Shown: positions 4,191 through 38,522 of the stretch, in pieces
How the letters are laid out: each line of letters starts with the position of its first letter
Position numbering within the stretch: the first letter of the stretch is position 1
DNA from: Amoeboaphelidium protococcarum X5
Lineage: Eukaryota; Fungi; Aphelidiomycota
Assembly: GCA_023515725.1 (NCBI GenBank)
Contig: JALDTO010000052.1
Coordinates: 1 to 41,569, forward strand
Length of the DNA: 41,569 bases
Direction: 5' to 3'
Translations under genes and position numbers: made by a program
Notes under the pieces: generated by a model
What the model saw: the letters and a program-made list of their open reading frames with translations, nothing else
Told to the model about the DNA's origin: nothing
The model's database searches: none

Positions 4191-4231
4191 ATCGTTACTT
4201 CTGTCACCATTACGCCTGCCTTTGGATGTGA

Positions 4232-7174: not shown

Positions 7175-8864
7175 ATGCCTTCTGCTGTGTAAGCAAAAGA
7201 CAACAAGACTGCCAATGGTGGTGCTGTTGATAGAATTGCTTAGTTGAAACAAGACTTGAAAAAATCTGAGACTTATGCAAGTGGTAAAGTCAAGAGCGTT
7301 GTTAATAGAGTTGAGAAGTTTACCGACTTTTACTGTAAGTATTATATGGGCTGTTTCATATTTCACACTCTTTTCCTTATCATTGTGTGTAGTTACTCCA
7401 GAGTACAATCCAGTGTACATATTAACTTCAGCTCTGCCACGCTTTCTGACTTGGTTGAGTACTCTGGGTGCTCGTTATTTCACCTTCAGCCCTCCTGTGC
7501 CAACCTTTCTGCATGATGATGAATTCCCAACCGTATTGAATGTCCCATTCAGTGAGCGTTTGCAGTTCTATTGGCGTCTAGCTACGGCGTATGTTCCCAA
7601 GATGGTAAAAGGCTTGGCTGTGGCTACTTACATGGCCTTCTTCGATTACCAGGCCAAGCCAATTTCTGATCCGCAGTTATCTCATGTATTTGGAAACACT
7701 GTTTATGCCAAGTTCTTGAAGTAAGTTGACAAGGTTGAGTGGCTTAGTGCTCGCTAGATTCCAGTGTCTGCACCAAATGGTTACTGGTATTACATTGCCG
7801 ACTTTTCTTTTGTTCCTAATGTAAAGATCTGGTCAGACTTTCGCACTAGTGGAAGTGTCGGTGTCTTCCGTGTTAGCAAGACTGCTGGAATCAAGGTACC
7901 GGAGCCTGTTGCTATTCAGCTGACTTGGGTCAAGAACTAGGACAAAAATGTGCAAGTTTACGTTCCTGGTGATAATGCATGGCCTGGTGCCAAGTTGTTC
8001 ATGATGCAAGGAGCCGCCAAGATGGGTAGTTTGGTCGAGCACCCGAAAGCTCATTTTCCGTATGACTCTGTTAATGCTTTCACCCACCACCTGCCTAATG
8101 GTCACTTATTAAAGACTTTGCTGTGGCCGCATCTGAAGTACACTTTGGCTCTGAATGATACCGTCTTGAACTCTGTCTATCTGTCGATTGTGATCAATCC
8201 ACTGATGAGCTAGACTCCATTCGATGCTCCACCAGAGGAATTGAGAAAGTATTTACAAGAGTCTCGTGAGACTTTCAAGTATGTCAAGAATGGTGTTGAG
8301 AAGGATAATGTGTTCCCGTACGGTACGTTTCTGAGCAGATATCATGATGTTTACATGAAGTTTGTCGGCAAGGTTGTTGACCATGCCTGGGAGCAACTGT
8401 ACACTCCTGAAACTGTTAAATGGGGTGACCAGATTGCTGCCATTGTTCCTGGATTCCCAGATGGTAAGCAGTTGTAGGACAAGCAGTTGTTTAAGTAGAT
8501 CATTGCCCAGATCATGTGGAATGTCTCTGTGTTTCACGGTGCTGATCACTACACTTTCTACAAGATTCCGTGGAACCAGAACTGCTGGCGTCTTCGCGAG
8601 GACCCACCTCAGAGCCCGGAGACTGCATTCGATTTCAAGTGGGCCCATGCGCCAATCGACATGTGGAAACTGGCTCAGACTCAAATTGTGTTCTTCTACA
8701 CTGGCGCATCCAGCAAGTTGGAGGATGTGAACTACAAGTTCAGAGATGCAAAGCTGAAGCAATACGCTTTGGAGTTTCGCGCCGCTCTAATGGCTGTAGA
8801 CTCGATCAAGGACGATGCTCACTGCATGGATTTGAACCTTATTGGTCCAAGTATCGACTATTGA
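7175..8864 (+). CDS. Divergent lipoxygenase-family protein (543 aa; intron 7335-7392)
   Basis: AWPGAKLF...EHPKAHF...LPNGHLLKTLLWPHLKYTLALN, NVSVFHGADH and C-terminal PSIDY* follow LOX motif order. Four standard-code ORF fragments are in one frame, joined by TAA/TAG. Confidence 0.78.
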
Positions 8865-9238
8865 TTGACTAAGTATATATCATCGTACGGTCCGTGGTGA
8901 TTTTGTAAGAGTGTATAACGGAATGAATGTATTGACGAAATAGGGTGATTTATAATTATGGATATTATTTTACTGTTTGTGTGTCTATTTTATACCGCCA
9001 TGTTAATGGGACATGCGTCTTTGTAATTCATTCATTTCGTCAATTTAAATGAGGCAGCCGTGAAACGAAATTGTTTCAAGTCTTTTGCTTTGTCTTTGCA
9101 TTGTTGTACTATAAGCACGTATTGTCTATCATAGTGTCTGAGTATAGTATTTATCTCAGTAGTTTTCGTTAGTAATTTCTCCATAGTTATCATTTGACGA
9201 ATTGTTGATTATCCAAGCATAAGACTATAGTTTTTGAA

Positions 9239-11149
9239 ATGGTGCATGAGATTGCGTATGTTGTGTTGAGCTGTAAGAGATACAAGCTTCGGTACAATAA
9301 TTTAGGAGATGTTCCTGATAGACCTTGTGGATTTGATGTGGAATTATTGAACGTTCAAAAAAAGTAGACTATGCTATTGCCTTTGCATCCGGGCCTGCAT
9401 AGTTGGGCTGAAATTGGAGTGTTCCAGAGAGGTGCCTGCTTGGCGAATATTGAGCTGACTGAAGACGGCGACGAACCGTCAATGTTGGAAGGCTGCGCTA
9501 CTGATCCCAACTATCCTGCACCGTTAGCGGATGTTGATATTCCACTGATTCATGACGCGAATCCACCTCGGCGAAATCCATAATATAATTTCGTTCGCAA
9601 TTGCTATATTGATTCTATGAGCGACGATAGATGGATTCCCAGTACTTAAGAGCAGTTATTACAACAAGAGATTGACTGGTAAACAAAACACCCACCCATA
9701 CGCCAAGATCATTTAATGCTCAGTGATGCCGTGTTGAGAACTCAACCTCTGATAGGCCGCGTGATGAGCAAGAATAGTGCATTTAATTATATTAAAACCA
9801 ACAGATTTGATGATGATTATCCATTCAAGTTTATGATTGATCTGTATGATTCTAGTCAGCAGAAATAATAATGCGTGATTTGGGGCAAGTTTGCTGTAAA
9901 GTATTTTGACATGGTCACTGTTGGAGCTATAATATATGTAGACCGATACACAATGCATGGCAATGAGGTCAAAGTTAAGTCTCTTAAAGTGCTGAATCCT
10001 GGCCACTTTGTGGGTTGGAATCCTCATTAATACAGAGACAGGTTTCCCTCGCTGATGTTGAATGTCATCGACTTACATCAGAGTTTGGATTTATACTCCA
10101 ACTCTAATGATTTATTTGATCTTATTGGAAAGGTGTTTTATTATAGTGATACTTTCATCAGGTGCGGGATCTATAAAAGAAAAGGGGATAAAAACTATTT
10201 GAATGGCGGCTGGCTTTCTTATAAATGGGTTGGCATAGAGTAGAAGAGCCGTTCTAATAATGGTCAAAAAGTACGGTTATTTATGAAACTGTTTGCCTGT
10301 TCTTAATAGTAAGCTCTTTGTCATTTAAAGGTTGGTGACATTCTGTTGATTACTTCTGCTCAGGTCGACTAGTTTGGAGACTTTCGGCTTGTCAAAACGA
10401 GTAGTCAATCTTAAATCCTGATTTATGAAGATATTTAACATGTTCGTGAATAGTATCGTGCTCTGGTGGACTTTGATTCGGAGCTTAAAGTCCGAAGTCA
10501 CAATGATCTGTTCAGATTTCCCTACTAAAATCGTGATATAGAGAGTATAGCTCTTGAGTCAGATATGCCTATGATGGAATTACATGAGGTGTCCTAATGG
10601 ATTTCTTTCTGTCCACTGAATAGCCGTCGACTAGCTGTGGTGAATGGTCTGATTACAGAGGTGAGCTTAGAATATTCAGCAGATAAAATTATACCGCTCG
10701 ATATGCCTAACCTTGTTACTCACAATGCTATTTACCAGTGTCAAAATATCATCCTGTAGAAATATTCTGAGCGTCCTCAATAAATTGTGTATCCATATTT
10801 AAGGATCACGATTTCCCACCATAATAATTACAACGAGAACAATAATAGCGATGAATCTGAGATTATGTCTGTCGGTATATCTCCGAGTTTTGCATGTATT
10901 GATGACAGTTATAAGGGGGAGTTTGATGAGGACTTTGTTGGCAATTGGGTGTCCAGATCAGTAGCTCAGGTCATTAAACCGATATTAACTGAACGCATTT
11001 ATCAGGAAATGTTGGATTCTGATGAGTTCTAGTATGACGTTTTGATTAGAGATTTGAAGGGTTTGCAATGCTCTTTAGTGTGTGAGTTTGAGCGATTCAG
11101 TTATAGCCAGGTGATGGTTCATGCTCTTTATTTAGCTGCACTAGGATGA
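9239..11149 (+). CDS. RADX-like (RPA-related) multi-OB-fold ssDNA-binding protein (636 aa)
   Basis: PLIGRVMSK...PFKFMIDLYDSS...CVIWG...YFDMVTVG, DLIGKVFY...WLSYKWV...MKLFACSQ and KTSSQSQI resemble the RADX OB domains as I recall them. Single frame ending in TGA. Confidence 0.65.
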
Positions 11150-11438
11150 ACTTTGAATATCTATTTCTCTGTTAATGCTGAGTAAACTTTTTATAATTTG
11201 CATTTCTATCTTACGTTCCTACACCTTCATTGGAATAGGTAAGCACATCGTTCAAGTTGTGCTTTTAAACACGCCTGATTGGAGATCATGATGTAAGGCT
11301 ATTAATATACTACCCATGGTTACTTGCGCTTTGGCTATTAATATACGAAAAATTTCTCATAACTGCTCTGTCCCGGTATTTTATTTACCATTAATCCCGC
11401 TATTAGAGTAAAATCTAATCTAGTTAATTTGCATCGAT

Positions 11439-13415
11439 ATGGACATTGAGCAATCTAGCACGCTTGACAGGTTTATACAAGAGGCGCCAACGGCCAGTAC
11501 CTCTGCGGATGTAACCACTGATAGACCAGCCCGACAAGAAACTCTGGATTTGAACGAAAGTGTAATGCCGTCGACTATTGTTGCTCTCGCTAGTCTGTAG
11601 GACCAACATCATATGCTTACTGCGGAGGTTGATGAAGTTGAAACTAGAAGCTTTAGTGACGACAATGCCCATGATGCTAAAGGGAGTAATAATACAGCGA
11701 TTGATGATCAAACAGTACCAATGGTGGAAGTTCACAAGAGTACAACACCTGAACAGTCGCAGTAGTTGAATGCTCCGATGGATACAAAAGCGGCAGCCTC
11801 AATTGCTGATGATGGTATGCTTGCTGTGCCAAGAGTTAATCAAGATGTATTGAAATCGACCAACTCTGTGGGTGCGCGTAGTCAGATTCACGGCTCTGAG
11901 TACTTTAAAGGCAGCTAATTCTTACAGAGTGGACCGAAAGCTAAATTTTGGTCTTGGGCTATAACGATTGGTGTGAAGCATATCTTGTATATCATGATAG
12001 TGTCCTCGATGTATGCCGGTCTCTCTCTGATTCCAATGTAAGATCTGATGACCTAAAATTACTACGCAGCTGGATTTGCTTTTGTTGCCAGTTAGATGCC
12101 CGTGGCGATCTCCATCAGTTTCAGTGCCGTCTTCTGGTTGAAGTCTTTTATGGGAGTGCCTTACAGCTGGTCTGCCAAGAGAGATATGATACCTGGATTT
12201 GTGTACGCTGTAATTTCCGGTGTCATTTACATTGTAATTGTTATGAGTGGTCAGTGGCCTTTCCCATTGACCTCTATTATTGGAGGCGGTTCCTTCTACT
12301 CAATTGTACTTCCGCCCATGGTGTGGGTGATGTTGCCTCGCAGCCTAACATCTCAGGTGAAGAAGTACTCGTTCAGTGACCCGATATTTAGAAAATTTGT
12401 ACGCGCATGTATCGTCGTGGCCACCATGAACATTTACTATTTCATGCTGTTAATTTTCTACTACCTGTTCACCTTGAGTACTTCTACTGCAGTATTTTAG
12501 CTGATCCTGGTGGCGGTGTTCAAGTTCTCGACCAGTCTGTTCATCTACTTCAGATGTAATATGGTAGAACTGGCTGCTAATGATACTGGTCTTATAGAGA
12601 ATGATCCTGCTTTCAAGAAGGGCTCTGATGCGTACAAACACTAGTTGCGTGTAAATCGTATGGTTGGTCACGAGATGAGTGTCTTTGCAAAGTTTGAAAT
12701 TTCAGCGATGTAGGAGAGTTACTTTGCCATGTGTTTCCCTGCCATTAGAGGATGGGAGACTTTTGTGCTCCTCATTGTATTCCTCAATATGACCTTATTC
12801 TTTGAGCTGATGCACACGAAAGTGACCAACATGGATGGTATGGTGTTCGTCTTCCATTACACTTACCAGAAGATTCGTCAACTGCTAGGGATGAGCAATG
12901 AGTTTGATCGTACCAATGGCAGCGGATAGTTGGGAAAATCAAAGGCAAGAGATCCACAAGCAGAGGCTGTGATGATCAAGTATAGAAACAAACTGCCAGA
13001 GAATTATCTAAAACTGCCTGCTGCCTACCTGGGTAGAATGGAATTTTACTTTCTGGGTCTGCTGGCTAAGCTCTTTGGCAGTATCATCTTTTGTTTTCTT
13101 GCACCCGTCTACTTCTTTGGGCCTAATCACGATTGGTATGGTGTCGTGTTTGACTTTCCTCTGGAAATTCTAATTGATTCATACATAAGAGCGGGAATAT
13201 CTATTGGCGCCTTGGTTATCAATTTGGCCTGTGCAACTCTGTACGTGAGATACCGCGCTAATGGAATATCCTTGATTTTGATTGGCCTTAGTGTTATCCA
13301 TGGCAAGTGGAGTAGACTCATGTATGCGGCTTACTGGTTGGCGCCCGTCTTCATGTACTCTCAGCTGGGTAAAATGTTTATGGTTGTGTACTGGTTTACA
13401 AATGGACGAGATTGA
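11439..13415 (+). CDS. Unknown multipass membrane protein (658 aa; disordered N-terminus)
   Basis: ORF fragments at 12096, 12729 and 12930 share a frame with ATG 11439; many hydrophobic helices; TGA at 13413-13415. Confidence 0.75.
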
Positions 13416-13564
13416 TTTAATTTGGTTGACTATTCAATTTTACTGGAGCTTTCAGGAGGATCATGAGGTAGCTTTAATAAGGGTTGAACAGTGATGATGA
13501 GTGAAGTAATACAAAATAGATTTAAACAAGGGTTTAAACTCTCATTAATTTTTTAAACATCAAT

Positions 13565-16030
13565 TCATTGAGAATCTTGCGACGGACTCGACCTTCCACT
13601 TTATTAAGCTATTACCACCGACAACTTACCGGTCTTTAGAGATTCAACACGATTTACAACACCGCCAGAGCCTTTATAAGTAAATCCGACAAACGCGAGT
13701 CGCTTACGCAAATCTATCATGGACTGACTCAAATCAGGATCTGAACTAGATAGTAGCGATGAGGAACCTTGAGACTTTCGACATTCTTCTGCTTTAATCT
13801 CTGCAGCTTAGGCTACATTTCCGGTAGAGCTGTGGCGATCAGGATCGTATTTCTCCTCAGCAGATTCATTATTTACAATTTTAGGTGCATATGGCCCTGT
13901 AAAATCCGTGCCATCATTATTAGAAGCGTCAAAGTATCTAGTATCAGTATCTCCAGAAATTTATGGTATCCATGGGGCAGTCTATTCGTGAAGTCTACTA
14001 AAATCTATCCCATTGAACCACGGATGTTTCTTTATCTACGACGCATCTTAACCGGTGAGCATTATGTTAAGCACAGCGGTAAATGGCAAATTTCCCTCTG
14101 CATCCACCTGTTCAGCTTTCTAGTCCGCACTGGAGACCGATTACGCGCCGCCTAGTCTTTACTTTTTATCACACAATAGTTATCGAATCAAATCCACCGC
14201 CTGTCTTGACACCTCTCCAGCATACGCATATCCGTGAGAATCTTTTCTAGTTACATAAGATGGAAACTTGAGCCATTTCTTCCAATCTTGTATTTTCAGT
14301 CGCGTTCCATCTTTGCTTTTACTTGCAAACGGAGGATAGCCGTACAGCATCTCAAACACAATCACTGCGAAGCTCCACCAGTCGCAACTATAATCATACG
14401 GATTACCCTGCAAAACTTCTGGAGCTATATAGTTGTTTGTACCAACAATACTGTAATCGCGTGCGTGAGGATGTTAAAGTCTTGCTCTTGCACGCCACGT
14501 CAGCAGTTTGTGTTCATCCGGAGGATTCATCAACACGTTGGTCATCAGAGCGTCGCGTTTAACTGAGGATGAATCTGATAAATCGTCTAAACTTGTGACA
14601 TTGACATCAGCACCCACCGCGAGTGAAGCTCCGGATTTACCGCCAGCAATTTCTAGCGTACTTGCAATATAATCATCAAGCTCCTGCCGCTCAGATTCCA
14701 AATTCTACTTCACCTCCTGTTCAACATCAGATTAGAATTTGCTAGCTTTATACGCCAGCTTTCGCACAATCTCATAATACTTCGTCTCATGACTCCAATG
14801 AAAATCTGTGGCTAGTCCGCAATCGCCTAGCTTTAAGTGACCGCGAGCATCAATGAGGAAGTTATCAGGCTTAACATCACGATGTACATATCCAAGTTTA
14901 TGAGCTTCCTCTAGGCATAGTATCATCTGAGCAGCGTAAAATCTAGCCATCTCTTCAGGGAACGTGTCAAATTAGATTAACAGTGATAGAAAGTCACCAC
15001 CTTGCAGATACTCCATAATAAAGTACAAATAATCAATGTCTTGAAAAGAGTAGATAAGCTTGACCAACCAGCGGCAACTATCATTTGATGCAGCTTCACT
15101 AAGAAGGTCGCGTTCTGCCCTGACGTGAGACTCTTGATTTTCTCTGATCATCACTTCTTTTGACAGGATCTTCATAGCATAAACAACATTGCTACTCTTC
15201 TCTCTTACCAACTATACGCTTCCAAACGCTCCTTTGCCAAGTATTTTCAGTGGCTCAAAGTGGTGTGGAGTGATCTTCTCTCTACTGATGCGAGTGAGGA
15301 GATGCTCTCGCTATATCCACTCCTCCCGTACTTTGGAGCACTCTTCTTCGCTCAACTTCAACTTACCCAGTTCTTACTCAATTTGAAGTCTTCGACGCGT
15401 TCTTGATGATGCAGCAGAAGGACTGGACGACTTGCCAGTAAACAATCTATCAAAGTAATGTTCAAAATATATCTTGGCAGCGACAGATCTCTCTGTAGTA
15501 GCAACGCTATAGCGATGTTTCTATTACGATGATGATTGAGGTGCGGTCGATACTTCCTTTGATTATTTCACTTAGACGCCTGAGGAATTTTAAGTGGCGG
15601 CATTTCCAGCTGGCTGTGCACTTCCAGGTCTTATCGCCGATTGTTAAAGTGCCGTATCGACTGCCTGTAAGTTAGTGATATCATTACTGATTGACTTTCT
15701 ATGTAACTTTTTCGGTTTCACGTCGCCAGATTGCTGCGTTGTTGTTATTGAAGACGCTTGTTACTGTGTTGTCAGGCCGGTTGCAATTACGTTCAGGTCC
15801 TTCTACTGCCTCGGTACTAAACTCCCATTTGGTAGCTATTATTGACTTTAAAATTACTTTTATAATTCTACAATGATATATTTATGATATAGCGATTTAT
15901 AAGTACAGAAAAATATCAAAAAGTTACAGCCACTATTCAGTTTCATAGATCCGTGCAGAGATGATGAAACAAAGTCTTGATTCAATATGCTGTCAATATT
16001 GGTTAAATCATCACCCTCATCCAAATCCAT
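13565..16030 (-). CDS. NDR/LATS-family AGC Ser/Thr kinase (Cbk1/Orb6-like; probable intron 15868-15927)
   Basis: [47 protein letters not shown] and hydrophobic motif LAFVGFTY. Confidence 0.92.
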
Positions 16031-16290
16031 AATTATACAGTTTTTAATATTTACAGTCTAGCTTAATAATTGTATTGACAAGTTTAAAGTGGAGAAATGG
16101 ACCAATTAAAGAAGTTTCCATGTAAAATATGTGTGCGAACCAAAGTTGTCAAGATACGCAGTGATCAAACAGAGGGTGATTTATTGCAGGTGTAAACATT
16201 GAAACATACAGGCAAAATTTGATATAACAAAGCATTATAAGTGAACTAATACATTATAAACTTCATCAGCAACATATTTGAGTACGTCAC

Positions 16291-17270
16291 TCATTCATTC
16301 AAACGTCTACCTTGACCCGCCCATCGATGTCTCATGCCATCTTGTGCGGCCTGCTATTATCTTCCGGTTGAAGAACCAGCAGCAGACGCGCCGCCAACTG
16401 CTTAATCATCAGGAACGTACGCTTTTCTACACACACAAAATTACATCACATAAACTCTGGTAATCGCACATAACAATAATCTGGCATTCTTACAATATCT
16501 GAGGCGTCTATAACATCTTGCGTCCCTGAGACTGAGGCATACGCGGGTAAACTTCCTCTAGAAAGTAGTACACATGAGCACAAAACATTCCAAACACGGA
16601 ACTAATGTTGAACGTTCCACTTAGTAAATCATACAACAGAATCACCACCGGAAGATACATTGCCTACAATGATATGAAGATTACCATATAACTTTGACAG
16701 AGACAGATTAGTTCATGTAAAATACCTTGAAGCGCAGTCCAAAAAAGAACGAGACAATAGTCTCCTTGTTCAACTAACTCCATAGGTAGATGAAACTGAG
16801 TATAAATCCCTAAGTCATTATAGGATACGTGAAGAGATAGCCTAACATGTTTAGCATCACAATCATGAGCAACACAAAGTATACCATGTCAGCCTTGGAC
16901 TTTCCATTCGGGGCGGAAAAGTAAGTCTACTCAAGAGACTTGACATACTGATAGAGGAAGAGCAACTGGAACAGCAGATTAATTCCAGTCTTCACGTACA
17001 GACAGCCGGTGAAGATTCGCCACAACTAACCTTTCAACAGAAGTGGTCCATACATGAACATTGAATATACGCTCACAAGACCCAACGCTACATTAATGTG
17101 ATATAAAATAGTCAGCATCGCCGCGACTGACAAGGTATATTATTACCTTCACTGAGGGATAAGGCAATCACAGCGGTCATAATACTGCGCGTCACCAATG
17201 GAACACCATAATAGGCAGCGAGCAGTTCATTTTAAACAGGTCTTTAATTATTATTGTTATTATTACTCAT
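16291..17270 (-). CDS. Derlin (Der1/Dfm1-like ERAD rhomboid pseudoprotease; 263 aa; introns 17088-17146, 16664-16725, 16427-16493)
   Basis: VPLVTR, GQLWRIFT (Q is TAG), FKAMYLP, HVYYFLEEVYP and a C-terminal SHP-box-like WAGQGRRL. The exons sum to 792 nt. Confidence 0.9.
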
Positions 17271-17533
17271 CTTTACAAAGGATACAGCGAATATTCCACC
17301 AATTTAAAATCGCTTATAATTAAATAAAAATCGTAAGCTTGTGACTATTGTAAAGCGCGAAAGGCAAGCGTTGAATGAAGCGAAGTTTAGCGACACATTT
17401 ATCATAAGCGAAGTGACCGCGTAAAAGAGCATGTTATAGCAGAGTGCGTTCATGCAACAAGAAAACTCAGTATAATGAGATATGAATAATACAGGCAATT
17501 TCATATTGAGTATTATCAGTCACTAACAAGAAA

Positions 17534-18522
17534 TCATTCAACTTCCATTGCAACTCCGCCTTGTGATTACAATGCTGCGGCTGGAATAAAACGCTCCTCT
17601 GTAACATCAACATACGCTCTGAAATCACTCTTTAATACAACAGATGTGCCGGCAGGCAACTTGTAGCTCCTCTCCTTCTTCTCACGCACATTAGGCTGCT
17701 TGAGATTGCGCAGGTATTCAACTTTCACCGGACCCAGGGTCGGAGTATTCGGTGGCAGAGCCGATATCTGCTGCGCAGTCAACTACTCTCTACTCAACAC
17801 CGTCACGTCAACATTGGATCCACTGCCAAGATCGTTGAAAATACCAGCCTCGATCGCCTACACTACCAAGTCGATTGCCTACTACTTGGACATATCCTTC
17901 TTCCAACCAGCCTCGAAAATGGCCATCGCAGCTAGAGAACCAGATCCCATAGTCACAAATGGCAATCTATCGGTACTACCATGAGGATAGATGGTGTACA
18001 GCTATGGACCGCTGACATCGATACCTCCCAGAACCAGTGCAGCACCGATATGCCCCTAGTACTTGAACAGCATCTACTTTAACATGGTGAGCGCTGTAGA
18101 AATTCTGCACTCTCTACCACTGGCTAGCTGGTGCAGAGACAATTACTCCGAGATCAACATGGTGGTCATTTCAGTGTCGGCAGCAGTTCCAGCACCACAG
18201 CAGTACATGTTCGGTGCCAGGTAGTGAATCTTCTCACAATTCTTGTCTGCAACAATGTTACCCTCAGTCGCTCTGGTATCTGCTCCAAGTACAACTCCGT
18301 CCTTGTAAATCACACCGACAATGGTAGTACCAGTCTTAGTCGCCTTGGGTGGATGAGTTCCCTTACTGGCTAACATTGCATTTCTACACGACAATTGTTC
18401 ATACCTCGACGAGTATAAAAGTTGACATTATATAAACGACAGTGATAAGTAAAAATATACCTTTTAATGTTGTCAATGACAAATCCAGTCTTGTTAACTT
18501 CAATTCTCTAAGCGTCACACAT
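17534..18522 (-). CDS. PUP1: 20S proteasome subunit beta-2 (PSMB7/Pup1; intron 18384-18460)
   Basis: KTG/TTIVG processing site, [46 protein letters not shown]. Confidence 0.96.
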
Positions 18523-19356
18523 GGCTGTCAGACTTGCGTTTCTATAAATGCTACGTAAAGAATATAATGATGATGATGTTGAAGGCCAAAGGGAGAAGCC
18601 AAAGAACGAATAAATCGAGTTGTAACGGCGACCGTTTCTCTCTCGTGAAAAAAGGAAAGAGGACCGAGAGCGAATGTTGTCGTGTCTTTGGGCGACACGG
18701 GAAAGCGCTGGCTTGGAACTTCTACTATTAAAAATGTTGAAAATGTAGCCGTCGTACACTTCACATTATGACGTAGTTAATGAGAAAGTGTATAAGAGTA
18801 GGCGCGTCAGCTAAGATTAAAGTTTTATTGGCGATCATCAATTATTCAAGCTGTGTGTTGGCATCATACGCGCGACAAATATTCATTATAACACGATAAA
18901 CAACAACACCAACGGACCATTGCTGGGCAGAATCGTCGTTGTCGCGTTTTAAAAAGCGAGAAAGAAAACGTCAGTCGGGGATCGCGTCTTTATAGTATTG
19001 ACACATGTCACAATTTTATCATCAAAACAATCACTTTTAAGCTAGACTTTGTGACTTTAGACTAGTTTAAAGCATATTTGATCAATTAAGGAATGGTCAC
19101 CTATTGCACCAATATAGTTTTGATTCATAAACGCTTGTTAAAACAGTCTTAAACTTAAGTAATGTCAATCTCGAAGTTTCGTCGTCGGCACTCGTTCCAC
19201 AAAAAAACTTTCACACGCACTCTCTCTCTCTCCCTCAAACGATCGCTGACTAATCGATTTGATTTCTTTTGCGTGTTTTACTATCAAACTTCTCTGTCAT
19301 TTCATTGTTGAACAATTATATCTACATATACAGTAGATTGATGAATGTTAATTGAA

Positions 19357-20943
19357 ATGTAGCGATAAAATAAATAAATGTTTGCAGGATATACTGCGGT
19401 GGATAGTGGCGATTAAGAATATAACTCTCATCAATAGTCATCCACAAATACTTTATGGAGTGTAATAAGTGTCAAAAATAGAAAATGGCGATAATTGCCA
19501 GCTGCAACAACTTTTGTAGTTTCGCTTGCTCTCTTCACCGATATGCTAGTCTATGGTATTGTCATTCCAGTCTTGCCAAGTATTTTGAAGGATCTGAATT
19601 TAGCAGAGACCAATCTTGGACTTTTAGTCGGAGTATATGGACTTGGATTGCTTATTGCAGCGCCCGCTGTCGGCTGGGTGTGTGATCATTACGAGGGAAC
19701 TCCGTACCATGATATGACGCGCCGATGGTCCATGTTGGCTGGTCTCGCAGGTCTTGGAATATCTACTATTCTATTCGGTTTCGTGGATACTGATCCATCA
19801 TAGAGCGGTCTCGGTCTGGCTCTATTGATTATTGCTCGATTTGCACAGGGTGTTAGTGGAGCTGTTACGTGGTCTGTTGGTCTTTCGCTGATCGCCGATG
19901 TATATTCCACAGAAGTGCTTGGCTCTGCCATGGGTATTTGTATGTCTGCACAGGTGTTTGGTTAACTTGCTGGTCCTCCCTTGGGTGGATTTCTGTACGA
20001 GTTTGTGGGCAAAGTGTCTCCATTCTTGTTCTCTGGTGCACTTGCTATTATTGATCTTGTATTTCGACTTTGGGTTAAGCCTCAGAGGATTTTAAAGTAG
20101 AGTACCGTTGTTGCAGAGTCCACATTAGTATCGCCAGTCAGTACTGATGGTGGTGATGCGGGTGATAATAATAATACACTGTTACGCTCGTCGTCTGTAG
20201 GGGCCGCTGCCTCTCCGCAGGTGATCAAGATATCAATGATAGAGATGGTACGTGCTCCGTCACTTTTACTTGCGTTCGCTGCCACTATTGCAATGTCCAC
20301 GGCGTATAGTGGTGTTGAGCCTACTCTGCCTCTCTATCTACCCATTGCATTTCCTCCTACTTCTGGAGTGAAGATGAATTAGAGTATGATCGGACTGCTG
20401 ATGGTGGCCATAGTGGTTCCCAACATCATATTGGCTGTGGTTGCTGGTTGGCTATCTGATCGATATAGTAAGAAGCTGGTGTCTGGATACTCAATGGTAC
20501 TCACTGCCATTAGTATGCCTTTGATTGCTATTCCGAAAGCGGATAACTATGGTAATCATGATGTCGATCGATGGGGTAGTGGAATATGGTTGCAGGTGCT
20601 CACTCTGATGGTGTTTGGATCGTTCAGTGCTTTCGCCATTACTCCTCTTCTGCCAGAGATTGGTAATTATATTACAGCTAGGGGTGGTACTTCGTATACG
20701 TAGGTGTATGCTCTATTCAATATGGCATATAGTGTGGGTATGCTCGTAGGTCCAATCGCTGCTGGATTCGTGTATGAATGGCTCGGATTCTTCTGGTGTA
20801 TGTTCTTATTTGCTGTTATTGTCCTCATTGTGGGAATATTATAAATCCTTGCTGGTCTGGGTTAGACGAAATACATATCCATTAACGATAGCGCAGGCGA
20901 TGAAAACGTTCGTATTGTTGATACTCGCGTTTAAAGTGACTGA
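19357..20943 (+). CDS. MFS transporter, vesicular amine transporter-like (528 aa)
   Basis: FTDMLVYGIVIPVLP, ARFAQGVSGAVTWSVGLSLIADVY, AGPPLGGFLY, VYALFNMAYSVGMLVGP. Confidence 0.88.
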
Positions 20944-21077
20944 GTAAGTCAATGGGATAATTGAGTCAATCTTATTATGACATTGTTGTTTTAATACAAT
21001 TATCAGATAAATGTTTTGACTTTATAATAAAGTTGAATTTTTTACATATTCACTCAAAGTAGTTCTCTCCTTTTTCA

Positions 21078-23156
21078 TCAGATTCTCATAATCTTCACAC
21101 AGGTTCTATCAGCCACACCGTGATACATCTCAGCCTCTGGATCTTGTTGAATTGCTTCCTAAAGCTAATTCTTACTCATCGGATTGATAATAAAACTAGC
21201 ATAGGTACCGCCAACTTATGCTCGTCCTCCTCCACCAACTCTACACAAATGGCCAGGATTAACTACTAGAGAATCATGGACGTTCTTTGCAAACATTGTC
21301 AACTTGGATGGTAATAGAAGAATATCAGGGCGTACAGAGAGTCCGAGTGCTTATGGATGCTAGTCTGATACGTACAACGACTGATTCGGTGGATCCAGAG
21401 GATAGAGTGACCTCTGTCTCATCATATCTTCCACTAATCTACTGATACGATCAGCATGCACTTACTTACTTGGAAATCTGGAGATTTCTTCACGACTCAG
21501 ATCCATTAGAATATCAGTGGACGTCACTGCCACGTAGACTTCATTAACGACAAATACTGAAGGATTAGCCACGCATTGAATTCTGTTCAGAATCTTTACA
21601 TCTTCCACCAGATCTTTAGGGAATAGAGCCAGCTTATCGTACGGCGGTTGTGGTAAGGCGACATGAGGATGGATAGCATCGTCAACCGAAGGAATGAATA
21701 CTATTCTGCTATTGGATTAGTCCTACAGATAATCTACAATTATAGGTGCCACTTTGAGATTAAAAATTTCCAATGGTGTGAGATCACTCAGAGACAAAGA
21801 CGCTTCTTGTTCATCAACAAAGGGGCCAATTAAAACAATCACATTTGCCGAGGGATTTTGTCGACATTGCTGTAGAAATGCAACCAGTGGTTCAAAGTCA
21901 CAGCTACCACCAACAGTAAAAGGTCCACGAGCCACAGCTAGATGAATTGGCTGCCCATTCATGTAACGCTTATCGTGAGAGTATTATAACAAATTTGAGC
22001 ATGGAGTAGATGGTGGCTCTGGCAGGCTTGGGTTCATGAGCACAGACGACGTGAATACATCTCTCCCTGAATTATTAGTTCCTTCTACGCCCACAATTTT
22101 ACCTGGAAAGACGGAATACTCTTCAACTCCATTAACGTTCAGTCTGATGCGTTTCACCTCCTGGCTATCCGCGTCAGCAGTTGACAAAGTGGAACATTCC
22201 AACATTATTGACTGATCATTCATCTTCCCCGTGGAGTCACAGCAAATCTTGCCATAAGTTTTAACAGATACTTGAGAAGCTTGGAACGGATCGGCAATAG
22301 AATCAACAAAATCAAAATCTTGCGTAATTTACTAACCAAGGACAGCTAATCTGTCGCAAGATGCGTCCACTACACTCTCGCAAGTTTCCGACATGTAGCG
22401 GTACTTGGTGTTGAAAACATAATCTGGATAGGCGGCCACTTCCACCAACTGAGAGCTACATTCAGATTACATTGCAACGTCAGATTGAACAGCCAATTGC
22501 TCATTGTAACAAATCTCCACCTTTCCAGAGTTTTGTCTCTCTTTGAAAGCGGATGAAGTCACAGAGGATAATTACTGATTAACAGCGTGAATGTTCTATT
22601 ACGACGCAATAGGCGTTTAAGGAGATGCAAACTATGGAGTGTCATTTAATTATGGCAATGCAGTACTTTTAGATGAAGTGAAGCCATTTCCAAAAGTATT
22701 ACCACCACCACCACCAAGACTCAACTTTTTACTCTTCTTCAAAGATCCGACTGGAACGCGAAACGGCGTCGAAAACGGCGCGGAATTCGGCAATGCGCTA
22801 TTAGTGGCGGAGACTTGAGACATCTTGGTCTACTACTCAACCTATTGACGCAAATAACTTTTAAATAAAAGCAAGGATTACTCAGTGTATTCCTGCTATT
22901 ATAAATTATTATCAGAATTTTCTTTACTCATCTATTGCATTGCAAAAGACTCCCATTTGTTATGCACATTCTCAGGTTTCAACTAATACAGCTTGCAAAT
23001 ACGGCCCACTACAAAAATGTAATTACGGTATTCAGTTTAATTGGAATTTACGACAACTTGTAAATTCTTACATTCTTCCAAAACGGTATTATCAGCCTCT
23101 GAAGTGGGATAGAACAGGCTTTATAGCTTCTAAATAGTAGCATTTTAAGTGTCCAT
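21078..23156 (-). CDS. POL12: DNA polymerase alpha subunit B (671 aa; intron 23009-23071)
   Basis: N-terminal ICKLY..KWESF, YSVFPGKIVGVEGTN, VARGPFT, LIGPFVD, C-terminal VKIMRI*. Confidence 0.93.
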
Positions 23157-24862: not shown

Positions 24863-24878
24863 CTCTCTCTCTCTCTCT
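24863..24878. repeat. (CT)8 microsatellite
   Basis: Seen directly in the 5' region of UBP8. Similar short runs: (CT)6 at 19220-19231 and (AC)6 at 31751-31762. Confidence 0.8.
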
Positions 24879-24898
24879 ATCTCTATAACTGATTAAAT

Positions 24899-26743: not shown

Positions 26744-26801
26744 CAATAGAATTAGAGCATTTTAAGCAAATCTATGACATTTCTTAAACTAGGTCTAATC
26801 A

Positions 26802-27863: not shown

Positions 27864-28269
27864 TTAGATCTTATAATTTTTATGGTTCTGAATTTCGATA
27901 GACTTCAATTGCAGGAGTGCAGTGATGAAGATGGAAAGGCGCCCCTTAGCAACGGCATCAAAACTATAGATTTATGCCAAAGAGTCCAAAACAGAAGGCA
28001 AAGGATAATGCTATGGCACCAGTAATATTGCGTTTCCTCAAGTGTACTACCAAATTTCAATTTCAGTTGAATCCGACAAGGCTACGGTTGTCACTTTAAA
28101 GCAATCACTTCATGTTACAGGCGTGATGTGATCGTTCTTATTGGCTGATGTTCATGACGTTGCACGCTGCGACAGAACATGTTTCAATATTTATCCACCA
28201 TCATTATTTTCTCGTAATTTATAAAGAGATACAAGGTATACTAACATATATTAGATTGCATTAGAATAA

Positions 28270-29538
28270 ATGGGCTGTTTCAAGCGAATATACAAGATAG
28301 TGCCGCGAAAATTCAGGGCGTTTGCAGTGATGTTTTTGACGTTGCTCTGCTTATCCATGTTTGTCATACCTGCTTACTTTCAGTATAGAAGAGAGGGATT
28401 AAAAAATACAGCCACGAAGGCTCAATTTAATATATCAGGCAGTGGATCACTTTGGGGTAAAGATTAGATTTCAGTATACTTGAACGTCATATCGGTGAAT
28501 GTACCAACGCCAGAAATTTAAATGATTGCGCGCGTCGTGCCTGGTGGCATTTACGGCTCCACTGATGAAGATAGAAACTCTGGTTAGCTTGCTGCAGATC
28601 TACCTGGTCCCTTATAACTGGTTATTGGCGAAAATGGTATCTACAATTTCACCGCCGGACAGACAATTCCGGCTCTTAGATTTACCTTACCACTCTTTGA
28701 AGGAGACGTGAATGATTATCCATTTGACGTGTTTCAAGGTGCAGGTTTTATTAAAGCTTAAATTTAGTCACAGCGCATCCCTATTGGTCTGGATGTTGAT
28801 GCTGCAATTCCAAATTGGATAATAGTGCCGTAAATTTAAGTTATGGACTCCACACAAACCGCGCTCTTACGACTTACTGCTGCTCGATCATCCACCAGCA
28901 AAGCTTTTGCCATCTTCATCGTCATCCTTATGTGGCTCTTAAGTCTCTCAGCCTTTGGTGTCGCCGTAGATGCTCTTATCAGAAAACTAGATGTTCATCC
29001 GCCCATTCTGGCATCTGTCATTGGTCTGATTTTTGCACTTCCTTAGCTAAGGCGCGCGATTCCCGGTGTGCCTGAGGTCGGCGTTGGTATTGACATTTTG
29101 GGATTTTTCTGGAATATGGCTATTACTGGTATGGCAGCATTGATGATGATCACCATGTACATCCTCAGATACAAAGATCCGAAGCTGAGTCAAGTTTACT
29201 CTGACATTGAAACTTAAGAAGTATCATATGGCCCGTCGCGATTGAAACACTAATCGTACGCCACATTCATCAGTAAGAATGAAGATACAGATCATTGGGC
29301 TCAGCAGGAAGTTTAGCTATCTAGTAAAATGATGAACAGATCATCTTCGCATTCATCTGAGTCGTCTGCCACAAAAAGAAATTCAGTATCAACCATTGGC
29401 TCCGAGACTTCAGAAGAGATGGTTATTCACTCTGGTACTTCGTCTGTCGCGTCTTCCAATCCAAGCGCGGTCAAGAATGCCAAGTTCACGTTCACCACAC
29501 CCACTGACGAGTACATGAAGAGAATATCTTAGGTATGA
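28270..29538 (+). CDS. DUF4436-family membrane protein (422 aa)
   Basis: YPFD, KAFAIFIVILMW, LIFALPQLRRAIPGVPEVGVGIDILGFFWNM. Confidence 0.8.
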
Positions 29539-29643
29539 AGCTGCTGACGTCTCTCACTATTGATGCCTACTTTTTAAATAAAAATCAATTTTTTTTAATT
29601 ACCTAGTACTAATGTATTGTGCGTTGTTCTGATCGTAAATTAT

Positions 29644-29651
29644 TTTGGCGC
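29644..29651 (+). promoter_or_regulatory. Putative E2F site TTTGGCGC
   Basis: Exact TTTSSCGC match about 52 nt upstream of the TPP1-like ATG. Confidence 0.35.
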
Positions 29652-29702
29652 TTCTCTTTGATTGATAAGTTTCAGGAAAAGTCACTTTTGTACATAACAA
29701 AA

Positions 29703-31449
29703 ATGAGCCATTTGTAACAGTGTAAGAAATGGTTACTTACTCAGATACTATAACATGCTCAACCGGGTAAACTGGTAAATAATTATGGAAAGTCCAGCTT
29801 AAGCGAATAATTTGGCAAGTTGATGGATCCCAACACGACTCCCTACCATTCGCGTGAATTCACCGGCTCTGGATTAGTATGCAAATTGGTCAATCTAACT
29901 CAAGAGGACGCTTATGCTTATGCCACTTGTGTTATTTGTGATAATTCTCATTGTCTGTCTGCAGCTTTGGCTCCAGAACTGATATAGAAGTTGTTGAAAC
30001 AATGGTAAATTTTTGTGGTTAGAGCTACCATACGGATTTGGTTCACATGGATGATCGTGTAGCTCCAAGGAATACGTATCTTCATTGAATAACGCCATTA
30101 TAGCAATTAATAAAGCTTATGCTGCTATACAGAGTAACAATGGTATAAATTCCATTCGACTGCTGGTCCTGGATGGTGACTTTATGCTCATTGACCAACA
30201 TACTGGCGATTCAAGTGACACGCCAGCGCTAGTCTCTGTTTCAAAAACACCAGAAGGAACTCAGTTGCTCTAAAACATATGGTAATTCTATTTTTGCAAC
30301 ATCATTAAATAATTGATATATTGCTTATAATTTATCTCTATTTGTAGTTGTCCCCAACCAAGTAATGCCGATAAAATGAGCGATGCTTTGCTAGTTGAAG
30401 AGTCTGCAGACGCGTTTGATCCTCTTATCGCCTGCTTCACTCAGCCTTTTGATCAGTTGACATCGATCACTAACAACAATAATAATTCAATAGCTGATTC
30501 TGTTACTAATGCCGAAGAATAAACTTAACATCTAAAAAAGAATGTTCATTAAGCATTGGAAGAATTAAGATTTGCTTCCATCGATTGCTTCACTTTGCAA
30601 AGTGTCATGAAGTATTGCAGTAATGTTGATTAGTATCCCCTGGTCGGTCCGCAAGATTTCATCAGACAAGACCAGGATGCTGATTTAAGTCAATCCTCCA
30701 CTTAATAGACATCTTTCTCTAGCTTATCGACAATGAATTTTACTCTACAGGTGCCTAATTTGTAAAGTACTCCCAACAGGATTGATTAACCATCTCAAGA
30801 AGAAGTGCTGAATGCGAGAAATTTGGAATCAAATCTGGACTTTGGATTTGACAAAGATTTCGCGCCTTCAACTGGCCCCGAGATTCAGAGTACTATTGCC
30901 ACGTTGGACGATACAGAGAATGCGATGGATAGTCAATTGACTCACAATAAGTAATAGTAAGATGGTCAGTCGATGATGAACAGTAGTGAGTGTCACAGTC
31001 ACGATAATGCTGCATACATTCCAAACGGTTAAGTTCAAAGATATTCCTTCACCTCGTCATCTCAGACACATCAGTAGTCACCTCTATCTAATAGTGTAGT
31101 TACCAATTCAGTATCTGTATCCGTAGTGGAAGGCAGCTCTCTAATGTCGAACAAATCTAGTCCGCTCATTGATGGTACTCACGTCACTGCATCAAAACGC
31201 CGACGATTGAAGTAGTCTGCGATGCGTACAATTACAATGTCTTAATCTCCAACTACATCCACGTAATAAACATAGATGAATGAAAATATTAACAACAATA
31301 ATAGCTCAGGAACGGTTATAAGTGGCAGCAGTGATGTGGCTATTGAGTATCAATCAGATAATTCAATTCTGCGACACTGTAAGGAAGTTTCGACGCAAAC
31401 TGAACCTCCGCGCTTTGCCGTTCACTTTATCGATCCATCGCTATGGTGA
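29703..31449 (+). CDS. TPP1/Est3-like OB-fold protein with long disordered C-terminus (562 aa; intron 30005-30062)
   Basis: KWLLTQIL...ATCVICDNSHCLSAAL...SLNNAIIAI parallels the TPP1 OB pattern (PWI...VSDGTHS...C). The frame is restored by a GTA..TGTAG intron. Confidence 0.55.
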
Positions 31450-31905
31450 TATCAGTAAGCTATGATCTATAGTTACATGAAATACGCGTGTATTCTCTAC
31501 TATGTTATTATGGTATTTCTCATGCTAGTATAATTGATTTAGATTATGTTTGTTTCAATGAGTTTTATCTGTTCTAGCGACTCTAATGATAATGATGATG
31601 GCGGCGAGTTGAAACACGCGAATCACAGGCGGCCGTTGAACAAGCACGTTTTCTTCTTGTGTTTCGCCGTCGTTGTCGTCTTTGTTGAGTCAAAAAAGAG
31701 AAATCAACAACTTTTCACAATCTGAAAGAATTTCATTCTATTTCAAACAAACACACACACACATTTATAAGTGGGAATTATTACTATTCTACTCTAATAA
31801 ATCTTGATTGAATCCTCCTACATTATCACATTGATATTTACTTGCACAGTTATAGTGCAATAGTAATTCTATACCTTTCTAATATCAAAATAATTGATTT
31901 TTATA

Positions 31906-33813: not shown

Positions 33814-34020
33814 TTGCACTTCAGAGTGATGATTTGATTTGATAGAGCCCTTTATATTTGCATCTTGTATGTTTCCATTCAATTGCTTTTGTAAGGTTTT
33901 AAAGTTAACACTAAAAGGAATACTTGACATCTACTGTATTTGACTTCATCATATTCATCGGCAATTTCTACATTCATTACTACCTTTACAAAGGTAGCTT
34001 AAAAGTTTAACCAACATCAC

Positions 34021-34965
34021 TCAAGCCACGTCGCCTTAACCTTTTAGGGGCCTCCTCTCTGGCTCTGTCAATTTGAACCACAACTCCATGGCGGCATCAA
34101 TTGCTGGCAACTTCCACAATCTAGTGCTATGCAGTTGCATTAGACACACATAAGCGAGTAGCCACAAGATTCTGCTGAGTAGACGCGATATCTCCGATGC
34201 CGGATACAGATAGCCATCAATTTGAGGCAGGCCAGAAGATCCTGCCCAAGTGACGATCATTGCCACCACTAGCGCCAAGTCACCCATAATCAGCAGTACC
34301 CACGATAAGCCAGCGTATATAAACAACTTCTTCTCGTGCATTGATAAAGTACCTTCCTGATTACGAATAGTCATGAATAGACGAACGAATACTGCCATTA
34401 TTGCAATATTTTACAAAGGGAGCATGAATAGATCAAAGGTTATCACGGCAGAAACAACATTCACGTTGGGATCCGCTACGGCAGCGTAAAAAGTGAATTG
34501 CAATACTTGTGCAAAGGTATACGCAGCAACAACATATACTATCTTTCTGCTAGCATACAGAGGATGAATATCAAACAATCTGATCCATGAAGAGAATACA
34601 CCAATTACCAGGACTAATAACGTGAATGCATGCTACAGAATCAATCCAACCTGCTAATTTAAATTAAATGGAGCATAATAAGTCGGGGGTGGAGCAGTGG
34701 TAGCATATTATAGCACTGATAGCGTCGGCGACCGGGTCATTGTATCAAATATAAACAGCAGTACAAGACACAGGAATCCCAAACCAAGCACTCCTGTTTG
34801 CGCAACATTATTCTTAACCAGAGATGTAAACTTTTACGCCTTGTACACGTATAATCCAAAGAACATTAGGAGAATCAACGCTGCGAATACGGACACCAGT
34901 GTCAATGGTTACAAGAATCGCTACTAATCAGATGTCGCATCCAGAGAATTTGGCAATTCGCTCAT
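34021..34965 (-). CDS. Orphan seven-transmembrane (GPCR-like topology) protein (314 aa)
   Basis: Single TGA-terminated frame with seven hydrophobic segments counted by eye. Confidence 0.7.
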
Positions 34966-35761
34966 GATATCTTCTAATGATACTTCTACTAAAGTTATGG
35001 TTTAACTATAATAGTGCTGAACTATTAATCAAGGTAAAGAAATTATTATCATGAAAGAGACTATAGATAGAGTCTTCATTTTTCTACTAGCCGCCGTAGT
35101 TAACGCATTGCCTCACTTTGTCTATTTTTAGACCTGCTGTTTCAAAGCTGATCATGATTGATCTATGACACTGCTTGAATATTGAATGAAGACCATATGT
35201 AAATCTTAAGATTAATTATGTATTGGCCTCCTTAGTGGTGGTATAGAAAGATTTTATAAGTTTGGGAGGCATTTAGGTTAAAACTACCTTATGCATACAT
35301 GGAGGAGTGCAATGCAATCAGATGTATTCATCAAGATCTGACACCTACTTTAATCACAAATTTAAGTGGCAAACTAACGCGCGATGAATATAATTCCGAT
35401 CGTGCATCATTAACACAAGTTGATTTAAATAAAAAACAAAATGATATAAATAGTAGATGTTGCCCAACTTATTAGCAGTGTATGGCTGATGATCGTGTAC
35501 CTACGTCATTGTTTGACTGAAAACATGGAACGACTGACCCCGCTTTTAGCTACTCTGCCGTTAACGATCACCAAAGAGGCGAGCAAATTGAAGAATTCTT
35601 CTTGTTCTTCGCCTTCATCACGCTTGTCAGTGCCGAAATTCGTCGTTTTGGGGCAACATTCGAATCGTCATTCTTCGCCGCGTCTGCAGTCAGAAGACTA
35701 AAATTATTATCATCATTGCCCATCTCAGCTGATACAATTAGACTCTGATCAGTCGCGTACG

Positions 35762-37543
35762 ATGCCTGTCCAAGATACAACTGCGGTGCCTCAGCCTAGA
35801 TTTTCTGTAATCGCTGCTAGTTCTGGCTTGGATTTTTCAGAGATTTAGCCTCTGAATAATAATAATAATAAGAGTATTAATTAAATTGTCGGCGGCGATG
35901 ATGACGATTATTGGGAACATGAAGCGGCGAATGAACGTCATTACCGAGCGCTGGTGAAGAAGTTTGACTGGCGAATTTTACCTTTTGTGACACTGATCTA
36001 TTTTTTGGCATTTATTGCGCGTATTAATATTTCTAATATTCATGATGAATTGATCCAGGATGTTGGCATATCGGAGTACTAGTACTCTCTGCTGGCGATG
36101 ATTTTCTTTGTGGGCTACACCATTTTTGAAATCCCTTCCAATTTGGGACTGAAGAGCTTTGGAGCTCGCGCCTGGCTTGGAGCTATGGCTTTAAGTAAGA
36201 TTTATAACTTGTGTAGGTGTTAACTTATATGATTGGCATTGTGATAATGTGTAGTTTGGGGATTACTTTGCGTGTGTTGTATATTTGCGCACAATTTCGC
36301 AGTATGGATTGTGCTGAGATCACTTTTGGGCTCCGTTGAAGCGGGCGTATTTCCAGGTATTTTGTATTATCTCAATTTCTGGTATAGAAGGTAGGAGATG
36401 GGGTTTAGATTTAGTATTTTCTTTACTGCTAGTCTACTCGCTGGTGGATTTGTCGGTCTGTTAGCGTACGTGGTCATCCCATTGACTGATGGATGGATTG
36501 GCCTGGCGGGGTGGTAGTGGCTTTTGATTGTGGAAGGTGTCCCCGGTATGATTGTTGGTATTGCTACATGGTTATACTTGCCATCTAATCCAAGACATGC
36601 CAGCTGGCTGAAGGAGGATGATAAGCGCGTTATTGAAGAAGTTCATCACGGCGAGGAAGGTGATGATCTGTTTTCTAGTAATATCAGTACACAAAATTGC
36701 GATGAAGATGGATATGATGATATTCCTTCTTACCTAGGTACTTCAGTAAATGATCAAAATACTATTGCTGCACCCGTCGATGATAAAGTTAAAAATTCTG
36801 ACCATTTGGAGAGCTAAAAAAAGCCCAAGTTGGAAAAGTCCTCCATCAGAGTATTTCTACGAGCGCTGCGTAACTCCACCCTGTGGATATTTTCACTCAC
36901 CTATTTGTGTATTGGAATTCCAGTGTCTGCTATCAACTTCTTCCTGCCATCCATCATTAAAATGGCCGGATTCCAGTTCTCTACCGCTAATCTGATTACT
37001 ATGCCTATATATGCAGCTGCTGCTCTCGTAACTTTGTGTATATCATTCAGTTCTGACAGACGCGGTGAGCGATGCTGGCACATTATTGCACCTCTTTCAG
37101 TGTCATTTATCGGGTTCACTGGTCTTGCTCTATTTAATCCTGGCACTGGTCTCCTGGTGGTGAAAGATACAGCTCATGCTTTCTCTACGGGATAGAACGT
37201 GCTGTCATTAGGATTTGCCAGTCTGTCTGTTATCGGAGCGTGTCCAGCTATTCCACTCTTCTGCACCTGGTTATCCACTATAATTCCGCGTTCCAAGCCT
37301 ACACTATTAGCAGTGGGTACCGGCATGATGGTTTCTGTTGGATAGTTATCCGGAATCATTGCACCTCAGCTGTACCCAGCACTTGATGCTTTGTATTAGA
37401 AAATCAATGGTTCACAGTGTGATGATGAAAATGCTCAGTGTATGATTTCATCCAATTACTCTTATGCACATCTGGCTGCCGCTGCATGTCTTCTAGTTGC
37501 CATGACTGGAACTTACCTGCTTAAGCGAGCGACTCGATAATGA
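35762..37543 (+). CDS. MFS transporter, anion:cation symporter/allantoate permease family (intron 36195-36254; start could be further upstream)
   Basis: KFDWRILP, FFVGYTIFEIPSN, EAGVFPG..YYLNFWY, GLAGWQWLLIVEG, SDRRGER. The intron contains an in-frame TGA. Confidence 0.9.
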
Positions 37544-37734
37544 TATTACGCCTTAAGATCTGTTTAGTATAAACTAATTTTGTGATTGAACTTTTAAATT
37601 GCTTCTTTGATTTTTTTGGATTGGAGATAGAATATGATGATTACTGTAGCTATAAATGTTGCCAAAATGTTTATTTCATAAGTCAAAACTCATAGTGATA
37701 TCTGTTTGCAATCAAATTGACTTCAATCAACATG

Positions 37735-38522
37735 TCACTTCACATTCTGTAGAGTGCCATTATTGATCTTTACAATCTTCTCCAAAGCTTCCAACCATGG
37801 CTTCAACTTGGCCATAGTTGCAGCCTCATCATCGCCTCCCAACTTTTTGTAAAACTCTGTACGGTATGGACACGCTTTCATTGCAAGCTACACATACAGT
37901 AAGTAATCAAGTGGGCCACACGACATGAAATGTTATAATAAAATACTAAAGTAAACTTACAGCAAATACTGGACGAATCAAAAAGTTGTGGTGCTTCTGT
38001 AAGGTGCCCTCATAAGCCTTGGTGAAGGACACGTTCAACTCCTCAGTCGGATTGTCCACGTTACGTCTCAGAGCAGAGCTGGTAAAGTCCAGCCCACGAT
38101 TCAACCACAGCAATCCTTCAGATGCAACCTTGCCTTTAGGTAGACTAGATTCTGCTTTAACGATCGCTTCCAGAGTGGAATATTGTTATGGATCCTAATT
38201 GTACTTTTCTCTAATCTTCTACACACACACAATTCCGAAAGTAGATGTTAAGTAAGTCGTCGCCATTTGCATCAATCATATGCAATCATCAGTCATACCT
38301 TAACATTACCATTCATGTCAGACTTGACTGGAGCGAAAGCAGTACCATTAAGAAAGTCTACACGGAGCATCAATCATTGCAGCCTATTGGAGACAAAACG
38401 AGAATCGTACCAAATAGCTTAATCAAATCCTCAGTAGCAGCCAGGAACTTGGCCACCTCCACTCCATTACTGGTAGGGACATCAGCGAACGATACAGTGA
38501 CTTGATCGAAAAATGTAGCCAT
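37735..38522 (-). CDS. Glycolipid transfer protein (GLTP/HET-C2 family; 193 aa; introns 38358-38410, 38219-38298, 37888-37960)
   Basis: AFAPVKSDMNGNVKK, EGLLWLNRGL, AYEGTLQKHH, AMKACPYR. Confidence 0.93.

Follow-up and report, generated by a model that had tools for sequence, protein, structure and literature searches.

A near-invariant TGTAG acceptor in the short introns of the aphelid Amoeboaphelidium protococcarum

Introns of the window and their RNA joints

The stretch of DNA analyzed here (the window) is the 41,569-nt contig C52 of Amoeboaphelidium protococcarum X5, part of a 23.6-Mb assembly in which genes are present as homeologous pairs. Genome duplication (PMC10608142) and the reassignment of TAA and TAG to glutamine (PMC5304391) have already been described for this organism. 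The altered code was evident in SDO1 (contig C9), which matches the protein of the other strain at 254 of 259 positions and has glutamine at all eight TAA/TAG codons. TAG was the commonest glutamine codon (632), followed by TAA (538), CAG (490) and CAA (466). The intron-bearing genes of the window and their introns are listed in Table 1. Pfam assignments were made by searching stop-free pieces, not joined spliced proteins, and the first gene had no match in the piece tested. The kinase is, as we take it from inspection, NDR/Cbk1-like.

Table 1. Introns of the window, with strand, host gene and supporting evidence
Position	Strand	Gene	Length (nt)	Features	Evidence
7335-7392	+	~560-aa gene	58	GTAAGT...TGTGTAG	sequence/frame; recovered acceptor-blind
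15868-15927	-	protein kinase (Pkinase match)	60	in frame	RNA joint in X2, X3, X5
16427-16493	-	derlin-like, intron 3	67	(TG)n run then TAG	RNA joint, three runs; also acceptor-blind
16664-16725	-	derlin-like, intron 2	62		RNA joint, 4/4 runs including freshwater metatranscriptome
17088-17146	-	derlin-like, intron 1	59	CTGAC at -28	RNA joint
18384-18460	-	proteasome beta subunit	77		RNA joint
23009-23071	-	DNA polymerase alpha subunit B-like (POLA2-like)	63	in frame, TGA-free	sequence and frame only
30005-30062	+	no assignment	58		excision restores frame
30282-30347	+	candidate 13th intron	66	in frame, AT-rich, GTAATT...TTTGTAG	TGTAG pattern
36195-36254	+	MFS-like transporter	60	in-frame TGA	sequence, frame
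37888-37960	-	GLTP, intron 3	73		frame; acceptor-blind; Pfam
38219-38298	-	GLTP, intron 2	80	(TG)n run then TAG	frame; acceptor-blind; Pfam
38358-38410	-	GLTP, intron 1	53		frame; acceptor-blind; Pfam

A preliminary description of this contig had listed twelve introns of 53-80 nt, and all twelve indeed begin with GTA and end with TGTAG on the gene strand. Three lie on the plus strand (7335, 30005 and 36195) and nine on the minus strand. Their excision yielded one open frame in 8/8 genes, read with TAA and TAG as glutamine. Eleven had been thought necessary for frame or conserved protein. This holds for the nine that shift the frame and for the MFS-like intron with its TGA, but not for the POLA2-like intron. 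A second TGTAG lies just 22 nt from the donor of the MFS-like intron, and the intron at 7335-7392 has a near-identical homeolog at C155:268411-268468.

RNA contigs were available from the runs X2, X3 and X5 (strain ~95-99% identical) and from a freshwater metatranscriptome. Exact joints were recovered at 5/5 introns within 14000-19400, and joints at other AGs, which the preliminary description had singled out as counter-evidence, were absent from the RNA contigs of this interval. The joints confirm that GT...AG introns are excised from mRNA, as expected of U2-type introns. The kinase intron, formerly described as in frame and less certain and, like the POLA2-like one, TGA-free, is now proven by its joint; in one X5 row the same joint had two letters placed between. 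In the proteasome beta intron an in-frame TCGAG (-21) and an in-frame GCCAG (+18) were both passed over. TG precedes only 6% of TAGs in the sequence examined, so that twelve of twelve would arise by chance with a probability of ~2e-15, and the five RNA-proven introns alone with ~8e-7. The longer GTGTAG ends 8/12 window introns.

The region 30282-30347 is probably an additional intron that was overlooked before, judged from its sequence. Because it was found by the TGTAG pattern, it does not count as independent evidence for the motif.

The acceptor across the genome

Distance-controlled counts were made genome-wide for GTAAGT donors only. TGTAG was found 1178 times at 40-70 nt after GTAAGT and 341 times in the control interval at 140-170 nt, an excess of ~840 (z 21). 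Far-distance controls were used because a reversed-pattern control was unmatched, TGAATG being twice as common as GTAAGT. TGCAG after GTAAGT showed no excess across the genome (317 against ~457 expected from local word frequencies), and neither did THYAG after GTAAGTT (583 near, 607 far). The latter counts cap the THYAG class at roughly one tenth of introns, a bound that avoidance of AG within real introns may bias downwards. TGTGTAG occurred 242 times against 50 in the program's control. Endings of the form (TG)nTAG had been called frequent; TGTGTAG closes 5/12 window introns and about one quarter of introns genome-wide.

An acceptor-blind reconstruction started from the gene ranges annotated for the sister strain and the lengths of their products, with a score that disregards the last five bases; two comparison loci were taken from that strain's public assembly. 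TGTAG was recovered at 10/11 intron positions in the sister strain, and one homeolog of this set had AGTAG instead. TGTAG was present at 22/23 positions (95% interval 78-100%). Intron 1 of a WD40 gene retains its GTAAGT donor in three copies, has no TGTAG in frame and ends in GATAG or TTGAG/TCGAG. A few intron-like rows of the genome-wide TGCAG listing, one homeolog pair among them, end in GTGCAG. Consequently, the acceptor, described as invariant and indeed so in the twelve window introns, is near-invariant in the genome. A self-trained gene model that contained no acceptor motif made 18 calls, seven of them TGTAG and several wrong; this insensitive test supports the motif in part. A bias of the first reading towards TGTAG is ruled out by the RNA joints, the distance-controlled counts and the acceptor-blind reconstruction. 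We conclude that the extended acceptor motif is real and genome-wide, yet not strictly invariant.

Upstream signals and candidate readers

The conventional upstream signals were sought in a set of 22 introns. As had been stated, a clear CTRAY is rare: within the last 35 nt it occurs in 1/12 window introns (the first derlin-like intron) and once in the 22 introns against 2.3 in shuffled sequence, so that the branch consensus typical of fungal introns is not seen. YTRAY (8 against 7.8 shuffled) was at chance level in the same set, and ACTAAC at a constant spacing from the AG was found neither in the position table nor in the motif test. By eye, CTRAY was present in 7/50 first rows of the genome-wide GTAAGT...TGTAG listing, where chance gives ~10%. 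TGAY occurred nine times against 5.0 (p 0.035, uncorrected) and, the set being small, a weak branch motif of this kind may exist. The absence of a consistent polypyrimidine tract was likewise borne out (pyrimidine fraction 0.55 at -20 to -6, 0.56 in the interior of the 22 introns). In this set G was found at -6 in 12/22 introns, TG density upstream of the acceptor was 0.13 vs 0.07, and conservation dropped steeply upstream of -5. The donor table of the window introns held neither the U12-type donor GTATCCTT nor the TCCTTAAC branch. The information that marks the 3' end sits in a fixed motif at the AG, (G)TGTAG with a weaker GU-rich run before it, and no longer in the branch point or a pyrimidine tract. 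Since the usual signals are missing, the spliceosome seems to locate the 3' end by a code other than that of other fungi.

Judged from sequence, the genome encodes the U2-type components, U2AF2 as a partial match. The SF1 gene is present twice (C235:486441-486770 and C192:195233-195562), and so is a U2AF2-like RRM2+UHM region (C214:638700-639350 on the minus strand and C233:463508-464158 on the plus strand; model positions 281-510, below the curated cut-off); no RRM1 match was listed beside it in the U2AF2 model search. U2AF1 is present once (C141:18335-18928, minus strand) and is 49-52% identical to a fungal seed, to which animal U2AF1 is 64-67% identical. SDO1, taken as yardstick, gives 50% between aphelid and fungus and 58-60% between fungus and animal. 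The divergence of U2AF1 is no greater than SDO1 predicts and therefore fits the general long branch of this genome. A CCCH search of the genome did not return U2AF1, and the aphelid protein was not among 150 cluster representatives. In the U2 snRNA the GUAGUA is intact; just 5' of it a U replaces the conserved C28 and one A is added. The RNA contains no CUACA, hence no complement to UGUAG, and U2 complementarity was rejected as reader of the motif.

A rewired U2AF specificity is the likely, inferred basis of the motif. By analogy with C. elegans, we give a probability of roughly 55% to the view that the U2AF heterodimer reads TGTAG early. The zinc fingers of U2AF1 hold U(-3)-A-G, and a preference for U at -3 is already present in the wild-type protein. 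Structurally, U2AF1 contacts only -3 to +1 and bonds the U at -3 via Ser34/His29 (PMC7505975). In A. protococcarum the U2AF1 zinc fingers would take U(-3)-A-G, while U2AF2, or an extended U2AF1 surface, would read U(-5)-G(-4) together with upstream GU. SF1/U2 would then choose a weakly specified adenosine nearby, and intron definition would be completed by a strong GTAAG or AAG|GTA donor, AT-rich content and a length of ~50-85 nt. Against reading by U2AF stand the unremarkable divergence of U2AF1 and at least one intron, that of the WD40 gene, in which the donor is conserved and the motif is missing. In 11/12 window introns the first AG beyond ~40 nt is that of TGTAG itself, and junction use therefore cannot separate the reading steps or the rivals. 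We tentatively consider a further-reaching version, in which a GU-reading module (either U2AF2 with altered specificity or an RRM protein in its place) might define the 3' site with essentially no branch consensus or pyrimidine tract. Such an arrangement would have no counterpart in the eukaryotes surveyed and no earlier description.

The motif could instead be enforced at the second step, U2AF being ordinary and the docking pocket (Prp8 with Slu7/Prp18-type factors) accepting only U-G-U before AG. Factors of the second step inspect -3 and its neighbours, and the steep loss of conservation upstream of -5 fits a small pocket. However, such a pocket does not account for early recognition of the 3' end in the absence of branch and pyrimidine signals, nor for the enrichment of G(-6) and GU, and we regard it as unlikely. 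A distinct RRM protein that binds UG (CELF- or TDP-43-like), took over RNA binding from U2AF2 and recruits U2AF1/U2 would account for the (TG)n extensions, seen in the TGTGTAG counts (242 vs 50), and for a U2AF2 model that matched RRM2+UHM without a listed RRM1. Most acceptors carry a single TG, however, and the absent RRM1 match may reflect divergence, introns or a scoring limit; we hold the replacement to be rather improbable.

It is very unlikely that the GUAG or UGUAG of the acceptor is recognised by base-pairing with an snRNA, be it U6, the 5' end of U1 or the loop of U5. GUAG is donor-like and a possible partner for the 5' end of U1, and the two changes in U2 lie just 5' of GUAGUA. On the other side stand the lack of CUACA in U2 and a survey of 50 species in which similar preferences could not be traced to snRNAs (PMC2483917). 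Mass intron creation by an Introner-like transposon would yield identical ends as its footprint, but it is extremely unlikely and was rejected, since the 22 non-homologous introns form no sequence-similar families (best local score 39 vs 40 shuffled), donors and lengths vary, and homeologs with interiors 86% identical agree at -4 to -1 in 10/10 cases, the last point being weak owing to the small sample.

Whatever reads the motif, it might have arisen because TAR=Gln filled exons with TAG/AG decoys or ended stop-based surveillance, as a link to the code change had been proposed. The rank of TAG as commonest glutamine codon is in line with this idea, but the terminal TAG is a stop in just one of three phases. 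Exonic TGTAG was not significantly avoided (91 against 106+/-9, z -1.7), the use of TAG and TAA after NTG was unchanged (p 0.8), and intron lengths of 3n were not significantly depleted (length classes 27/30/43, p 0.11). Spirotrich ciliates, which also read TAR as Gln, have a loose GTAAG...TAG only and no such motif (PMC1805493). We found no support for a link between the TGTAG acceptor and the code change, and consider this origin quite unlikely. No homologue hit came from A. occidentale.

Comparison with known acceptors

Of the acceptor bases, -4 is normally the least constrained; in A. protococcarum introns it is almost fixed as G. The bases -3 to -5 form the region disturbed by U2AF1 S34 cancer mutations. 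As the organism is cultured and relatives are sequenced, it offers a natural experiment on how U2AF and step-two factors read -3 to -5, which also bears on branch-point choice without a consensus. Furthermore, TGTAG offers a simple check on the gene models of aphelid genomes. In a survey of 50 eukaryotes only five departures from plain YAG were reported, none of them TGTAG (PMC2483917). Our search of the open literature found no description of a TGTAG acceptor; a mention in the genome paper (Mikhailov et al. 2022) is conceivable but doubtful.

The nematode analogy drawn earlier is apt. In C. elegans a TTTTCAG/R acceptor is read by U2AF (PMC1557818, PMC2483917), and in both organisms short U2-type introns carry their 3' information in a fixed motif abutting AG. 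As in C. elegans, at least five bases are fixed in most introns, but the TTTCAG sequence itself is not used, THYAG showing no excess. Unlike the nematode, A. protococcarum has a purine at -4, T and not C at -3, no T run and a GU-rich upstream region. Dependence on U2AF belongs to the C. elegans acceptor, and for A. protococcarum it would hold by analogy.

Ostreococcus lucimarinus prefers CGCAG (PMC2483917). Plants show a TGYAG bias. In both, as in TGTAG, the base at -4 is G and the one at -5 a pyrimidine. These preferences are weak and C is common at -3, whereas the exact pentamer is found in ~90% or more of A. protococcarum introns. In Trichomonas, Giardia and Yarrowia, too, a conserved 3' end occurs without a polypyrimidine tract, but there it is a branch point at fixed distance (PMC2483917); in A. 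protococcarum ACTAAC/CTRAY does not exceed chance and U2 offers no complement to the motif. Fritillaria borealis, with a duplicated, divergent U2AF and odd acceptors (10.1101/2025.08.15.670264), shares a lineage-specific shift in 3' splice-site specificity. However, its terminal dinucleotides change, whereas A. protococcarum retains GT-AG in extended form and showed no divergent U2AF paralogue. The ordinary introns of the zoosporic fungi Allomyces and Lobulomyces are likewise short and GT-AG, with GTA-type donors. Nine Allomyces introns ended in as many different acceptors, several of them having CTRAC, and for Lobulomyces a noisy reconstruction gave T-tracts with mixed acceptors. The introns of A. 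protococcarum are ordinary short U2-type GT-AG introns, and the extended acceptor TGTAG is new.

Donor context and intron length

Among the window introns, the weak donors GTATT, GTAATA, GTATA and GTATG are preceded by exonic AAG, and GTAAG donors follow exon ends other than AAG. Position +8 is T in 11 of the 12 donors. In the coding sequence analysed, GTAAGT is rarer than expected (24 vs 38.5). We also observed that AGTAG is commoner there than in synonymous shuffles (213 vs 156, z 5), and that the other NGTAG words show no such over-representation. An internal TGTAG 22 nt from the donor (36195-36216) is apparently skipped in the intron of the MFS-like transporter, as is one 31 nt from the donor in the third intron of the gene at 8366-9829 of L156, a comparison locus outside the window. 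This apparent skipping suggests that introns have a lower length limit of roughly 45-50 nt.

Other window genes and environmental transcripts

The two long ORFs at the contig end look like a LINE-type retroelement, with an N-terminus that appears endonuclease-like by inspection; the piece tested gave no Pfam match, and neither did the scanned piece of the 7170-8864 gene. Spliced transcripts in a 2024 freshwater metatranscriptome (run X1) are mostly 95-99% identical to the window, which indicates, as judged from sequence identity, that A. protococcarum or a very close species was active in that sample.

Coordinates of genes and model matches
Feature	Location	Strand	Remark
Two long ORFs	window 3-5656	-	cut off by contig end
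Gene	window 7170-8864	+	one piece scanned against Pfam
Gene	window 9209-11146	+	
Gene	window 11292-13412	+	
Gene	window 28132-29535	+	
U2AF2 match	C214:638700-639350		model positions 281-510
U2AF2 match	C233:463508-464158		model positions 281-510
U2AF1	C141:18335-18928	-	two pieces, one frame
U2 snRNA	L001:1501-1689 (in C273)	-	

Splicing factors and U2 snRNA

Both U2AF2 matches in the assembly are confined to RRM2 and UHM, and no adjoining RRM1 was among the matches listed; RRM1 may be diverged, intron-split or lost. U2AF1 was seen once, without a homeolog partner. The ~50 extra nt separating its two pieces are probably an in-frame intron. In the single U2 copy scored, the conserved C28 is replaced by U and one additional A lies immediately 5' of GUAGUA. 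In human U2, tumours repeatedly carry c.28C>T, for which no effect on splicing was detected (PMC8921233).
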